The notes beneath the pieces were generated by a model. The model made no database searches and was not told the origin of the DNA. It saw only the letters and a program-made list of their open reading frames with translations. The position numbers and the translations under genes were made by a program. From Chrysemys picta bellii (taxonomy: Eukaryota), in the NCBI RefSeq assembly GCF_011386835.1, contig NC_088802.1:54126001-54190000 (forward strand): a stretch of DNA of 64,000 nt, given 5' to 3'. This document shows, in pieces, positions 12,626 through 23,223 of the stretch. The number at the start of each line of letters is the position of its first letter. Within the stretch, counting starts at the first letter, position 1.

Positions 12626-12733
12626 CTCCCCTCGTAGAAAGACGTCTGATGGAGGTAAAGCTCAGGGAGCTGCCTGCCTGGCTGGCAGCTTGTGATTTCT
12701 CTCCAAAGGGACTGCTCGGAGCGGTGCAGAAAG
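12626..12733 (+). CDS. C17orf80: C17orf80 coding exon: (A)PLVERRLMEVKLRELPAWLAACDFSPKGLLGAVQK
   Basis: TTTTGTAG acceptor, AAG|GTGAGC donor, 108 nt, phase 1-1; similar to the ATP synthase subunit f N-terminal half. Confidence 0.9.
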
Positions 12734-12909
12734 GTGAGCCGGGATCACTTGCTTCTTCTCTGTTAACTTGTCTGGAGCGTAGGAGTAGTATGTTGATGTG
12801 AGAGACAATAGGAGTTATTTGGCATGAGTTATCTTCATGTAAAAGGAAGTGGCTTGGTAGACTACTGTAATTTTAAAAGCCAAATGGTTGGATCAGTCAG
12901 CCATGATAT

Positions 12910-13106
12910 GGGAGGGATAGCTCAGTGGTTTGAGCATTGGCCTGCTAAACCCAGGGTTGTGAGTTCAATCCTTGAGGGGGCCACTTGGGGATCTGGAGCA
13001 AAATCAGTACTTGATCCTGCTAGTGAAGGCAGGGGATGGACTCAACTCAACTCAATGACCTTTCAAGGTCCCTTCCAGTTCTAGGAGATAGGATATCTCC
13101 ATTAAT
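12910..13106 (+). mobile_element. tRNA-derived SINE with CR1-like 3' tail (tortoise polIII/SINE type)
   Basis: A box TAGCTCAGTGG (12918-12928), B box GAGTTCAATCC (12961-12971), tRNA-like head, CR1-type tail GACC..CAAGGTCCCTTCCAGTTCTAG. Confidence 0.85.
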
Positions 13107-13167
13107 TTATTTATAGCCCTAATTTGAGATGAATAACCAAGCTGGCCCCACGTTTCTATTTCAACAG

Positions 13168-13284
13168 CCTGGAGCAGTTACTACAACAAATACATCGACG
13201 TAAAGAAGGGTGGAGCTGCTGGGATCTCCATGCTGTTGGCTGGATATTGCATCCTCAGCTATGGCTGGAGATATGAGCATCTGA
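13168..13284 (+). CDS. C17orf80: C17orf80 coding exon: (A)WSSYYNKYIDVKKGGAAGISMLLAGYCILSYGWRYEHL
   Basis: TCAACAG acceptor, CTGA|GTAAGG donor, 117 nt, phase 1-1; YYNKYIDVKKG plus a hydrophobic helix typical of subunit f. Confidence 0.92.
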
Positions 13285-14567
13285 GTAAGGTTTTCTTCTT
13301 GGCCTTTGTCTCTTCCAAGCAAATCCTTCTTTCGTTTTAGAGCCCAAAAAATCTCGTCATTAGTCAAGTGATTTCAGGGTTATAAACACGACTATTGGAG
13401 CTCCCTGTCAGGGAGCTGATGAGAGTTATCCATTATTTATGGATTGTAAAGCCTTCTGGAGGAAAGCAAAAGCTGCCATGGTGGTGAACATTAGCCCAGG
13501 CTGGTTGGTGGCTTCATGCCCTGTGATTAATACCCTGCCCAGCAGGAACCAGGCATGCTACAGAGGCAGTGGTCTCATTCCCCAGCTGGTGGAAGGGAAT
13601 ACCCTACGTTATTCAGCTCGGAGACAGCTGGTCTATGAAGGGAGTGATGAGCTCTGAAGAAAGTGATAACTATTCCTACCCTGTCCAGAAGGCTGGTAAC
13701 TGTGGTGCTGGCTTAGAGGGATTGAGAACATACTGCATTCCCTTCCCCCTTGGGACATAAATCCTGCATCTCTCCTGTTTCATGTAGTTTCTAGGGCAGG
13801 GCTTTCCTCACACTGCTGAATTTAAGCAACTTCCTATCATGCAACTGTTTTTGAGAGAGCTGCTGTAGACTCTGAGTTAAAGGTTAACATTTGTAAAACG
13901 CTTTGAAGATGAAAAGCATTACGTTATTTAAAAACGTAATTTCCAGCCGCCGTCCCCTTTCAGTCATACAGCTCGTGTCAAAAAGGCCAGTGCCATGCTG
14001 CATACGTCACCATCTCAGCACCTTCCAGTACTGCATTGAGCAACGCGACTACATGGCCGTCCCATGTTTGTTCTCTCAGTCTCTTCCCAGGGGAGAAGCA
14101 CGTGCAGTGAAGTGTCGTGTTTTGGTAGGATGCGGGGGGCTTTAATATACACGTGGCTGTGTATTTATGTTGGGGAAAGCAGAAAGAAGTGTGCCTTGCT
14201 CTTGGGCTGGGCACATGCACAGATACATGGAAACATCTAACCAGTTGAGCTTGACGAGTAGCAATACTCTTATTGCTACTAGCTGGGTGTAATTAGGATT
14301 TAAACCTCTTCATTCCTGCCACTGTGTTCTCTTCCCTTCCTCCTTGAACTGCTATGCCAGACAGCTGATGCATGATAGAGTCAACCTGCAGGAGACAATT
14401 ATGGTAAACCAAAAAGATCAGTTAAACCCCACTCCAATAAAGCAGTTTAGACATTTATGGTCCTTTGAATATCTAGGAGGTCTTTAAACACTACCAGAGA
14501 AACATTACTATTTTTCACCAGGGGTAACATATTGTAGCGTTAACTTTGTATTTCTCGCTCTGTAAAG

Positions 14568-14596
14568 AACAAGATCGCTGGCGCAAGTATCACTGA
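14568..14596 (+). CDS. C17orf80: C17orf80 terminal coding exon: (K)QDRWRKYH*
   Basis: Pyrimidine tract plus TAAAG acceptor; phase-1 join gives HLKQDRWRKYH* (cf. ATP5MF HLKHERLRKYH*); total CDS 1836 nt = 611 aa. Confidence 0.88.
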
Positions 14597-20198: not shown

Positions 20199-21434
20199 CT
20201 GGAGAGAATATTTATGGAGACGAAAGATTTTTAGGAACCCTGTTGTACGCCTGCCCCTCCAGGTGAGTCAGGCAAAGATCTCCCACCCCTTCAGGCACTT
20301 CCCCCCTTGCAAAGTACCATAACAGCAGCAGTTTATACAGCACCAAAGTTCTTCAGTGCTGTGCACACAGTGCCACTGAGAGGCAGCCACCTCTGGGCTG
20401 GAACGCAGCCCCCAGCTAGCGCAGACCATGCTGCACAATAAGAAGGGAGGAGGACATTTTTGGCCTCAGCTCTTCGGAAAACAGGCACGTGTTCACACAA
20501 AGCAAACAGGGCTTTGGTCCTTAAAGTCCCAAGCCAGAGACGCCCTGCTTTTCCTGCCCCCCCCAGCAAAAGCATGAAGGGTCAAGTCAGCACTGACACA
20601 GGGTCAAACTTGAGATAACCCCGGGGTGGGGGGTTCCAGGTGCTCCCTACCTGATGCTTAGATCACCTCCCTCCTTCTCTGGGTTTCCATTAGCCCCCCA
20701 GCCTGCCAGTCGCTCACACCGTGCTTCCAGCCTCTATCCCCGCAGGGGCTCTGGCTAGCACACTCCCTCCCACCCCAGCTGCTGGCCCTGCTAGACGCCC
20801 ATGGGGCTTTCTGGAGCTCTCACCCTGAACAAGAACAGGCCCCTCCAGGGTGCAGCATTCGCTCTGCTAGAGGGGCCTCCACCCACACGGGTGCATCGAC
20901 ATCAGGGCCAAGCCCCCTGAACCTGGCCCACAGAGCCGACGTGAACATGAAACGCCCGGCTGAGAAACGCCCCTCGCCAAGGGACTGGCTCTGCTGCGTT
21001 GCAGGGAGCTGGCTCGGGGCAGGGCGTGGCCGGCAGGGAATTCCCAGATCTGGCGAAATGGGAACTTGCTGCAGAACAGGGGCTAGGGGGGCTGGCTCCC
21101 CAGCAGAGACAAGCAAGGAGTCCAGAGGGCAGTTCTCCTCACAGACAGCAGGCGGCACTAGCTTACCATTCTCCAGCATAGTTAGAAATCGGGCATTGCC
21201 CTGCAAGCGAACTGGGCATTGGGGTGGGTTAGCACTCAGTAAGGTCAGCCAGGATCGGAACGTGCCTTCGCCAGGGCAGTTACCCACCCGTACTGGCAGA
21301 GCTAACGTGGGCTCCAGACAGGCCAAGAGCTGGCTCAGATGGAGTCCGGCCGGTAGCTGCACTCCCTAGCCTGCTAGAGCTCTCCTAACCCTGCCCAGAA
21401 AGTGCCAGGCCCCCGCCCGGCTCCCAGCACCTAC

Positions 21435-21587
21435 CGAACTTGGAGTAGAAATAACACTCCGGCATCTTGCTCATGTCGTACTCGTGCAAGAACTCGCAGA
21501 GGTCTCCCCTCTTGCACAGCCCCCGCAGCCAGTGCTTACACACCACCGTCTTCTCCCCGCTGATGTGCCGGAAAGGACACATCAGGC
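21435..21587 (-). CDS. CPSF4L: CPSF4L exon 3: (G)LMCPFRHISGEKTVVCKHWLRGLCKRGDLCEFLHEYDMSKMPECYFYSKF
   Basis: 153 nt, phase 1-1; ZF2 and ZF3 start nearly identical to recalled CPSF30. Confidence 0.95.
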
Positions 21588-22527
21588 CTGGACGCAGAGC
21601 AGAGCAGACGCCTTGGTCCCTGCCTTGCCCAGAAGAACCCACTCCCCACTCCTCCCGCAGAGTCACCCTATCCTGCTCCCAGGACAGCCAGGGCAGGGGC
21701 GTGGCAACCAGACTCTAGTCCCCTCCGAAGCCTGGTGCTACAAGCCTCCTTGGGAGAGGATCCCCCAGCCCGCTCCAGCATCCCAGCAGCCGGGGTGTCA
21801 CTGGCACAGCGGACAGCATGAGAATCCTGTTCTTACCAGGGTTTCGCCAACTTCGCTGGCGTCGCCAGACAGAGAGACGCTCCCAGGGGTGGGGCCCGAG
21901 GCTCTGGTGGGAGCCCAGGAATCACTCCGCTGAGCTCAGTTCTCTGATGCTTAGAACTCCCTGCCTATGGGCTTCTGTACCACCCCCATCCGTGGTACCT
22001 GGGCATCCTCCCAGCGTCCTCAGGAGCCAGGGAAGGGCACTAGCCCCACGGCACAGATATTGGGGGCGGGAGGAGGACAGGCACAGAGAACAGGAGTGAC
22101 AGAAACAGAACCCAGGCCTCCAGAGCAGCAGCCGGTGCCATGGTCACAAGGCGAACCTCCCCAGCACCCGTGTCCTGCCTGTGCGCTCGGTCAGCGCCAA
22201 CCCCAGTCTGGAGGGGCCCCTCTAAGTCAGGGAGAGGCGGTGTGCGGCTCCAAGCAGCCCATTAACTCTGGGCCATCGCTGCCCAGATGCCTGGCAAGGG
22301 GCCAGCTTATTCCAGATGTGATGGCTGTTTCCATGGTGATGGCACTTGACCACTGGCGGTCGGGCTGAGATCCACCAACCCCTAGGACGCTGGCCTTTGA
22401 GCAGGGGGCAAGCCCCAGGGGCTGGTACTGGAATCTGTGTAAGGAGCTGGAGAGGAAAGGCTCCCTGTCAGGCTACCAATCTCCGAAATAACAGCATCCC
22501 TGCTCCCCCCGGGCTCCCATTACTTAC

Positions 22528-22578
22528 CCTTTGCACACAGTCCTCGGAGGAAGAACTCACACACGGACGCCCCCGACT
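22528..22578 (-). CDS. CPSF4L: CPSF4L exon 2: (K)SGASVCEFFLRGLCAK
   Basis: 51 nt, CCTTCCAG acceptor, AGG|GTAAGT donor; ZF1 start. Confidence 0.92.
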
Positions 22579-23120
22579 CTGGAAGGGGAGATGCAGTTAT
22601 TGGGGGGGGGGGGGAGTGTTTTCACCCACTCGTAACCACCCACAGGACACCACGATCCCAGGCATCGCCTGCAGCTCTGCAGAGATGGGACCCCCTGGGC
22701 TGGGCCAAACACACTAACTAGGATGGGGAACTCTTCCCCTTCCATCTGTCCCCATTTGAGTCTTTCTGGGATCTTGGGGTGGGCCCATCACCATGGTACC
22801 TGGGTGCCAGTCACTGCTAGAGTCACCACCTACAGAGAGGCTGGATGTCAGGGGGCGCCTCGCTCTGCTCACCACACCCCATGCAGCCCTCGTCCCCCCC
22901 ATACCCCTGCCGACGCCAGCACTCCACCCTGAGCCCCTCACCAGCCCCAGGGCAAATCCTACCAAGCCGCTGTGCATCGCAAGCCAGAGCCCTCTCTGGG
23001 CCTAGCAAAGGGGGCTGGCTGTAGGTGCGAGAGATGCTCCAGGAAGCTGGGAGCATGAACACAGAGCTGGGGCAGGACCTGGGGGGTGGGGTAGGGCTAT
23101 CAGGTCCCACCCCAACTTAC

Positions 23121-23223
23121 TGTCCATGCCTGGGAAGGGCAGGAGCAGGGCCCCTCGCTGGTGCTCCACATCCCGCTCTAAATCAAACATGAGCTTCTCC
23201 ACCCCAGCAATGAGCTCCTGCAT
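23121..23223 (-). CDS. CPSF4L: CPSF4L exon 1: MQELIAGVEKLMFDLERDVEHQRGALLLPFPGMD
   Basis: 103 nt, ACA|GTAAGT donor; matches the CPSF30 N-terminus; paralogue called CPSF4L from synteny between C17orf80 and CDC42EP4. Confidence 0.92.

Follow-up and report, generated by a model that had tools for sequence, protein, structure and literature searches.

A stretch of 64,000 nucleotides from Chrysemys picta bellii (assembly GCF_011386835.1, contig NC_088802.1, positions 54,126,001 to 54,190,000 of the forward strand; hereafter the window) raises the question of why the gene C17orf80, also named MTNAP1, ends in exons that resemble subunit f of the mitochondrial ATP synthase (ATP5MF), and why CPSF4L, a relative of CPSF4, lies at its 3' end on the opposite strand. 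An earlier note on this DNA had pointed out that the f-like 3' end of C17orf80 (+) converges on CPSF4L (-), and had proposed that a block duplication copied an ATP5MF–CPSF4 pair, after which the ATP5MF copy gained an N-terminal region. The exons, strands and stop codons of both genes were located, and the genes do lie tail to tail, with 2.1 kb between their stop codons. We conclude that a two-gene block was very probably copied as a unit, taking whole-genome and segmental duplication together. The fuller account, in which duplication of an ATP5MF–CPSF4 block gave rise to C17orf80–CPSF4L with whole-genome duplication as the favored event, is in our judgment likely.

In the literature, C17orf80/MTNAP1 is linked to mitochondrial DNA (mtDNA) maintenance, cristae shape and a recessive neurodegenerative disorder. 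The likeness of its C-terminus to subunit f has been known since 2023, when homology was reported (HHpred E = 2.6e-15) that spans nearly all of subunit f, membrane helix included, along with an N-terminal CCHC zinc finger and full-length orthologues found only in jawed vertebrates (Potter et al., 2023; J Cell Sci, PMC10445727). The experiments in that study show anchoring in the inner membrane via the C-terminus, and give no experimental support for an association with complex V (Potter et al., 2023). Duplication, paralogues and CPSF4 have 0 occurrences in the same paper; a 2026 paper on MTNAP1 disease mentions neither gene duplication nor CPSF4L, and a 2025 preprint on an electron microscopy (EM) screen has 0 occurrences of paralogue or duplication. 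No description of a paired-duplication origin was found in the literature searched, and comparative-genomics databases may hold it implicitly. As far as that literature goes, the shared introns and the paired-neighbor origin are what is added here to the known subunit-f homology.

Evidence from the window itself comes from searches with single exons and from database orthologues, and the exon-wise CPSF4L alignments were built by a local script. The large coding exon upstream of the f-like exons of C17orf80 has a phase 1 end (..GPQ, followed by a G ahead of the donor gtaaaa), and the open reading frame (ORF) to which it belongs (10573–12321, 582 residues) is 98% identical to C17orf80/MTNAP1 of Malaclemys. 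An AG acceptor directly precedes position 12626, the first base of the first of three further exons (A, B and C; Table 1), the second of which carries a YYNKYI motif and ends at the same donor as ATP5MF genes (A ahead of gtaagg). Used alone, exon A matches solved ATP synthase subunit f chains in the Protein Data Bank (PDB; phmmer, E = 3e-9, 36 of 37 residues aligned) and scores 22 bits on the Pfam family WRW (PF10206), under the cut-off of 26.5. The full annotated orthologue (P0001, 98% identical), whose splice pattern is that of the window gene, scores 40.5 bits against the same cut-off and covers profile positions 28–101 of 102. The f module makes up the C-terminal 84 residues of the ~608-residue C17orf80 and is 58–60% identical to frog and shark ATP5MF; among non-mammalian C17orf80 modules, 24 of 34 conserved positions are identical to those conserved in ATP5MF, most of them in the helix and the C-terminal tail. 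On this sequence evidence, the C-terminal exons of C17orf80 are confirmed as encoding a complete subunit-f module. The module has the profile match and the junction positions of ATP5MF but not the form of a stand-alone Fo subunit of ~90 residues, and because it is the C-terminal domain of a ~608-residue protein, C17orf80 is a paralogue and domain homologue of ATP5MF rather than its orthologue.

A further link between the two genes lies in their introns, which were compared between ATP5MF of a shark (L002), a teleost (L004) and a frog (L005) and C17orf80 of the turtle window, a chimaera (L001) and a teleost (L006). Three junctions fall at identical aligned residues, all in phase 1, in every ATP5MF and C17orf80 gene compared. 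The first lies within the codon preceding the P-L/V motif, where the module starts, the second within a G/A codon ahead of the YYNKYI region, and the third within a K codon after ...H-I/L, where the donor (A ahead of gtaag) is common to ATP5MF and C17orf80. Because intron positions and phases coincide, the f module is a DNA-level copy of ATP5MF exons 2–4. ATP5MF exon 1 is tiny, consisting of the start codon and 4–5 further codons, and the phase 1 end of the upstream C17orf80 exon makes possible an in-frame splice onto ATP5MF exon 2 that replaces exon 1. Loss of exon 1 and capture of an upstream exon would be the simplest route to the present C17orf80 gene, and the N-terminal gain proposed in the earlier note fits these shared positions and phases.

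That note had also described ATP5MF and CPSF4 as neighbors at human 7q22.1, and a published gene list for the region ('...BUD31 PTCD1 CPSF4 ATP5J2...') places CPSF4 and ATP5MF side by side. The linkage extends beyond mammals to bird, teleost and frog: in duck (L003), a teleost (L004) and Xenopus tropicalis (L005), ATP5MF is directly followed by a convergent CCCH-finger gene of 243–279 residues, across a gap of 0.4–3.4 kb. A tblastn search of these three loci found the CPSF4 exons for zinc fingers (ZF) 2–3, ZF3–4 and the knuckle, together with the CPSF4-type tail GHLAFLSGQ. In duck, a PTCD1-like pentatricopeptide repeat (PPR) gene lies beyond CPSF4, an order consistent with the published human list.

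C17orf80 and CPSF4L, for their part, are convergent neighbors in the turtle window, the frog Pelobates, sterlet and bichir, with gaps of 0.9–3.9 kb. A 269-residue CCCH gene converges on MTNAP1 in Pelobates (L007), a 217-residue CCCH gene with visible exons lies 0.9 kb downstream of C17orf80 in sterlet (L008), and in the bichir Erpetoichthys a CCCH gene of 271 residues follows it at a distance of 3.9 kb, the last on gene calls only. Since each linkage occurs in several bony-vertebrate lineages, both pairs were already present in the bony-vertebrate ancestor. Paralogues in the same order and the same orientation are thus found in both blocks in several lineages (bird, teleost and frog for one block; turtle, frog, sturgeon and bichir for the other), the pattern by which an ohnologue block is recognized.

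Whether the gene beside C17orf80 is truly CPSF4L can be judged from its exons, its residues and its place. In the window it comprises eight exons on the reverse strand, from an ATG at 23223 to a stop at 16707–16709, and these exons include those for the five CCCH fingers and the CCHC knuckle of the CPSF4/CPSF30 family. They are 90–100% identical (100% in most high-scoring segment pairs, HSPs) to annotated turtle CPSF4L proteins of Trachemys and Chrysemys (P0311 and P0307), and Pfam zf-CCCH and zf-CCHC match the corresponding turtle proteins P0311 and P0309. A word-index search with exon 1, which lies inside a 235-residue stop-free stretch, returned 10 proteins, all from turtles except one from a frog. 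Orthology to CPSF4L over CPSF4 is indicated by the turtle CPSF4-like matches, by the position between C17orf80 and CDC42EP4, by derived residues common with the frog gene and by a tree with support of 74/42. The genes adjoining fish and frog C17orf80 carry DPAS in place of the DPES of CPSF4, and their tails differ from GHLAFLSGQ; RRVMC in place of RRVIC is common to turtle and frog only, and other CPSF4L-type substitutions are found in part in sturgeon. CPSF4 itself is nearly invariant from teleost to bird, and its ZF2–3 exon is the same in teleost, frog and bird. With so little change in CPSF4, overall identity fails to separate CPSF4L from it, and the separation consists of a few shared derived residues and synteny.

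The surroundings of C17orf80 in fishes (L006, L010 and L008) include G-alpha, a TEPSIN-like ENTH gene, FAM104 and HID1, and in chimaera and Scleropages FAM104 is the head-to-head neighbor of C17orf80. We take all of these to be human 17q24–q25 genes, and assume that FAM104A (VCF1) is head to head with human C17orf80. On these human positions, the fish flanks support orthology of the region even where teleosts are without CPSF4L.

Phylogenetic trees of the f module were determined with 118 rows in a quick version and 50 rows in a careful one (~89 columns; unrooted). The 118-row tree has ATP5MF to one side of a single branch. The careful tree joins ATP5MF with the chimaera C17orf80 module in a starred group (96/96), apart from the bony-vertebrate C17orf80 modules; this agrees with a root between ATP5MF and C17orf80 and with the chimaera branching first. 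An approximately unbiased (AU) test did not reject the C17orf80 modules as one group (delta lnL, the log-likelihood difference, 1.05; p = 0.44). The CPSF4/CPSF4L tree, from an exon-wise, query-anchored alignment and likewise unrooted, separates CPSF4 from CPSF4L as expected at the support given above, and groups turtles with frog (87/86). The trees are weak, and are compatible with a paired duplication without amounting to proof of it. In the chimaera Callorhinchus, ATP5MF and C17orf80 are both present, which places the f duplication earlier than crown jawed vertebrates, and CPSF4L is traced to the bony-vertebrate ancestor only. The ages of the two duplications, which the earlier note had left to be compared, are not discordant: both duplicates are placed in the bony-vertebrate ancestor, and C17orf80 is present in the chimaera as well. 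Neither these ages nor the reach of the ATP5MF–CPSF4 linkage beyond mammals contradicts the block duplication of that note.

We propose the following course of events. An ancestral ATP5MF (+), tail to tail with CPSF4 (-), would have been copied as a single piece of DNA, introns included. The copying would predate the bony-vertebrate last common ancestor, and probably crown jawed vertebrates too, and would most likely have been part of one of the whole-genome duplications of early vertebrates. The genes of one copy would both have kept their old roles as ATP5MF and CPSF4. In the other, CPSF4 would have become CPSF4L, and the ATP5MF copy would have dropped exon 1, with exons 2–4 spliced instead to an upstream exon carrying a CCHC zinc finger and a disordered region; such a captured splice would be phase-compatible because all junctions are phase 1. 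The product would be C17orf80/MTNAP1, in which the former subunit-f membrane helix is proposed to serve as the inner-membrane anchor. That the block was copied only once, that the whole genome was duplicated with it and that an exon was captured are all inferences of ours.

Several observations weigh against this account. Turtle CPSF4L is ~80% similar to CPSF4 and likewise to frog CPSF4L, and the split between CPSF4 and CPSF4L in the tree is weak. In two teleosts, the 10-kb flanks of C17orf80 hold no CPSF4-like exon; this requires loss, and we read the absence as loss in teleosts. Nor was a CPSF4-like exon found within 10 kb downstream of Callorhinchus C17orf80; ATP5MF of the shark Heptranchias is flanked by genes for a BAR-RhoGAP protein of 739 residues and a galectin of 135 residues (L002:1-23947), and there is no CPSF4 exon in the 10-kb flanks of ATP5MF in the ray Pristis (L009). 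Neither linkage is seen within 10 kb at these three cartilaginous-fish loci, and of all the observations this one fits least well; the genes may lie farther apart there, the region may have been rearranged, or another ohnologue may have been retained. The shark setting resembles what we take to be the SH3BP1–LGALS1 neighborhood at human 22q13.1, a region that presumably also holds CDC42EP1, a paralogue of CDC42EP4. The shark locus may represent a third paralogous block, or else a relocation; more speculatively, ATP5MF may originally have had three ohnologues, different ones having been kept in cartilaginous and bony fishes. A remnant of the zinc-finger exon was sought upstream of ATP5MF at five loci, and none was found. 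The trees are unrooted, with no invertebrate or lamprey sequence among the best 150 matches of the representative search with the f module, and no amphioxus, tunicate or lamprey protein among the matches listed in protein searches. Finally, the wider paralogy between the two chromosome regions, which bears on the choice of mechanism, rests largely on presumed human gene positions.

Copying of a block remains the simplest reading because the two pairs match in order, orientation and spacing and the f module has its introns intact, and the block duplication of the earlier note is supported by both linkages across vertebrate classes as well as by the shared introns. The whole-genome form of this copying is favored because of the wider setting: a sidekick gene lies in the window (its C-terminal exon was located and is taken as that of SDK2 by position, in line with the SDK2 that the earlier note had placed nearby), a G-alpha gene lies by teleost C17orf80, and a published gene list for human 7q21.3–22.1 gives LMTK2, NPTX2, SMURF1 and KPNA7 alongside CPSF4/ATP5J2. 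A local segmental duplication of the two-gene block in an early vertebrate or jawed-vertebrate ancestor, with one copy later moved to a 17q25-like region, would yield the same two pairs. It would suit the fact that only ATP5MF/C17orf80 and CPSF4/CPSF4L are shown paired in both blocks, and that the visible flanks are not repeated, a PTCD1-like gene lying by CPSF4, as against CDC42EP4 in the window and FAM104, the TEPSIN-like gene and HID1 around C17orf80. We assume, however, that the paralogues AATK, NPTX1, SMURF2 and KPNA2, plus SDK2 and GNA13, lie at human 17q23–q25, and with these partners the sidekick, the G-alpha gene and the four 7q genes bear the signature of a whole-genome paralogon. 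The distribution of C17orf80 in gnathostomes only also fits the timing of the vertebrate duplications (Potter et al., 2023; PMC10445727). A segmental origin is thus unlikely, although we would still allow it a real share.

Far less credible are two independent duplications, with the copies of ATP5MF and CPSF4 ending up adjacent by chance or through selection for convergence. Gene trees cannot date the two events precisely, and the cartilaginous fishes with neither linkage within 10 kb leave room for separate histories, but the order, the tail-to-tail orientation and the kb-scale spacing are alike in both pairs across four vertebrate classes; we put the chance that independent duplicates of two neighbors would land adjacent in the same orientation at ~1e-4 or less. 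Even less can be said for a retrocopy of ATP5MF cDNA, inserted into or exonized by a C17orf80 gene that already existed, the f-like tail then being unconnected to CPSF4L. Processed copies of ATP5MF are common in mammals, and several divergent short ATP5MF-like proteins turned up in the search, but a retrocopy would be intronless, whereas the f module has two internal introns and a bounding third at the exact ATP5MF positions, in phase 1, in turtle, chimaera and teleost. A retrocopy origin of the f module was rejected on account of these shared ATP5MF introns, and its probability is close to nil.

The features of the window that underlie the account of paired duplication are collected in Table 1.

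Table 1. Exons of C17orf80 and CPSF4L, the zone between them, and neighboring genes (positions in the window).
Feature	Position	Strand	Remarks
C17orf80/MTNAP1, large coding exon	10573–12154	+	begins with ATG; codes for CCHC zinc finger (CPYCKK..HLPYC) and long disordered region
C17orf80, subunit-f-like exon A (APLVERRLMEVKLRELPAWL...VQK)	12626–12733	+	corresponds to ATP5MF exon 2; both boundaries phase 1
C17orf80, subunit-f-like exon B (AWSSYYNKYIDVKKGG and transmembrane helix, end ...YEHL)	13168–13284	+	corresponds to ATP5MF exon 3
C17orf80, subunit-f-like exon C ((K)QDRWRKYH and TGA stop)	14568–14596	+	corresponds to ATP5MF exon 4
Convergent 3' zone between the two stop codons	14597–16706	.	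AATAAA on + at 15868 and 16502; on - at 15767, 14756 and 14734
CPSF4L, last exon (CCHC zinc knuckle CGEKGHYANKC, CPSF4L-type tail SKSRLGIQLGK, stop)	16707–16775	-	
CPSF4L, exon 7 (low-complexity linker, end ...QVTCFK)	17571–17756	-	HSP to P0311 and P0307
CPSF4L, exon 6 (PKADLMQCNSDLSQ)	18514–18555	-	
CPSF4L, exon 5 (zinc fingers 4–5)	19232–19324	-	
CPSF4L, exon 4 (zinc fingers 3–4, CPSF4L-type DPAS signature)	20101–20199	-	
CPSF4L, exon 3 (zinc fingers 2–3)	21435–21587	-	human CPSF4 chains E = 5e-40; 46 of 49 residues identical
CPSF4L, exon 2 (zinc finger 1, SGASVCEFFLRGLCAKG)	22523–22578	-	approximate boundaries
CPSF4L, exon 1, coding part (MQELIAGVEK...PFPGMD)	23122–23223	-	turtle CPSF4L protein matches
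CDC42EP4, coding exon (PBD and BORG_CEP domains)	31579–32754	-	next gene past CPSF4L
Sidekick gene, terminal exon (GFSSFV, then stop)	~60552–60692	-	taken as SDK2 by position

Given the opposing poly(A) signals in the convergent zone, the 3' untranslated regions (UTRs) of C17orf80 and CPSF4L may overlap, on evidence at the motif level. At the other end of CPSF4L, the frame stays open for ~160 codons 5' of the ATG (23005–23709, -), and several turtle models (P0307–P0310) use an upstream start that gives an N-terminal extension of ~115–155 residues, similar across emydid and sea turtles; this extension could be real or merely a slow-evolving 5' UTR. CDC42EP4 presumably follows CPSF4L at human 17q25.1 as well. 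Two G+C-rich repetitive ORFs lie elsewhere in the window, one proline-rich with units like PPLGTFPLPLPMQS (6642–7760, +) in a stretch of ~63% G+C upstream of C17orf80, the other with units like GRDARPGRALGLVVGEGTPG (61192–62568, -), and both look like minisatellite arrays.

Database entries for C17orf80 and its relatives call for some care. A word-index protein search with the 84-residue module matched only bird entries labeled 'ATPK synthase, partial'; these 84-residue entries are the three f exons of C17orf80, misnamed, and not ATP5MF, the true sequences of which came only via an exhaustive representative search. Conger C17orf80 is named 'mucin-2', and many C17orf80 orthologues of 400–900 residues are called 'ATP synthase subunit f, mitochondrial' in UniRef. 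Mammalian f modules are far more diverged than those of sauropsids, amphibians and fish, with C-N/S-T-T in place of YYNKYI and a tail that is often ..RWRK; a precomputed Pfam WRW match is absent from mammalian C17orf80, and many isoforms are without exon A or have other terminal exons. In sterlet C17orf80, the N-terminal zinc-finger exon region occurs twice, ~4.2 kb apart (sterlet locus 9900–14410) and with 98–100% protein identity, which accounts for an 887-residue model; the repeat is either a tandem duplication within the gene or an assembly artefact. An Acipenser sinensis model (P0253, 553 aa) joins an N-terminal part of subunit f (WRW, residues 1–67) to PTCD1-like PPR repeats, and was not used as evidence, its source carrying a possible contamination flag. 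It resembles what we take to be a human ATP5MF–PTCD1 read-through.

If the paired duplication is accepted, C17orf80, which the literature treats as a young vertebrate gene merely resembling subunit f, gets a concrete origin in a duplicated block followed by exon capture. Such an origin would date the gene to the early vertebrate duplications and account for the presence of CPSF4L at its 3' end. Duplication with exon capture is a textbook kind of evolutionary event, and the surprise is accordingly moderate. With respect to function, the f module would be at least a conserved inner-membrane anchor with the topology of subunit f. A retained ancestral docking surface is suggested because the 24 conserved positions, including those of the helix and the RWRKYH tail, have been kept for >400 million years outside mammals. 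We speculate that C17orf80 might take the place of subunit f, or vie with it for that place, in ATP synthase or in an intermediate of its assembly, and might thereby link mtDNA nucleoids to the ATP synthase that shapes cristae, an idea that we hold to be rather doubtful. A possible contact between C17orf80 and ATP synthase becomes a question about a defined ancestral interface, for which sauropsid and fish orthologues are the least diverged.

Set beside known proteins, the f module matches the whole of mature ATP5MF, including the matrix-side L..VKL.ELP.W, YYNKYI..KKGG, the transmembrane helix and the ..RWRKYH tail. It differs in that C17orf80 has a zinc-finger/disordered exon replacing exon 1, and in the junction residue, which is A/G-W in C17orf80 and G-H/Y in ATP5MF. 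Unlike CPSF4 (CPSF30), the turtle gene on the opposite strand has DPAS for DPES, RRVMC for RRVIC and another C-terminal tail, and it adjoins C17orf80 instead of ATP5MF. At the level of the locus, the closest counterpart is ATP5MF–CPSF4(–PTCD1) at human 7q22.1, which has the same convergent arrangement of a subunit-f gene and a CPSF30-type gene (five CCCH fingers and a CCHC knuckle) with kb-scale 3' spacing. The two loci differ in what surrounds the pair: a PTCD1-like gene lies by CPSF4, whereas CDC42EP4 and sidekick lie by CPSF4L, and FAM104 by C17orf80 (in chimaera and Scleropages).

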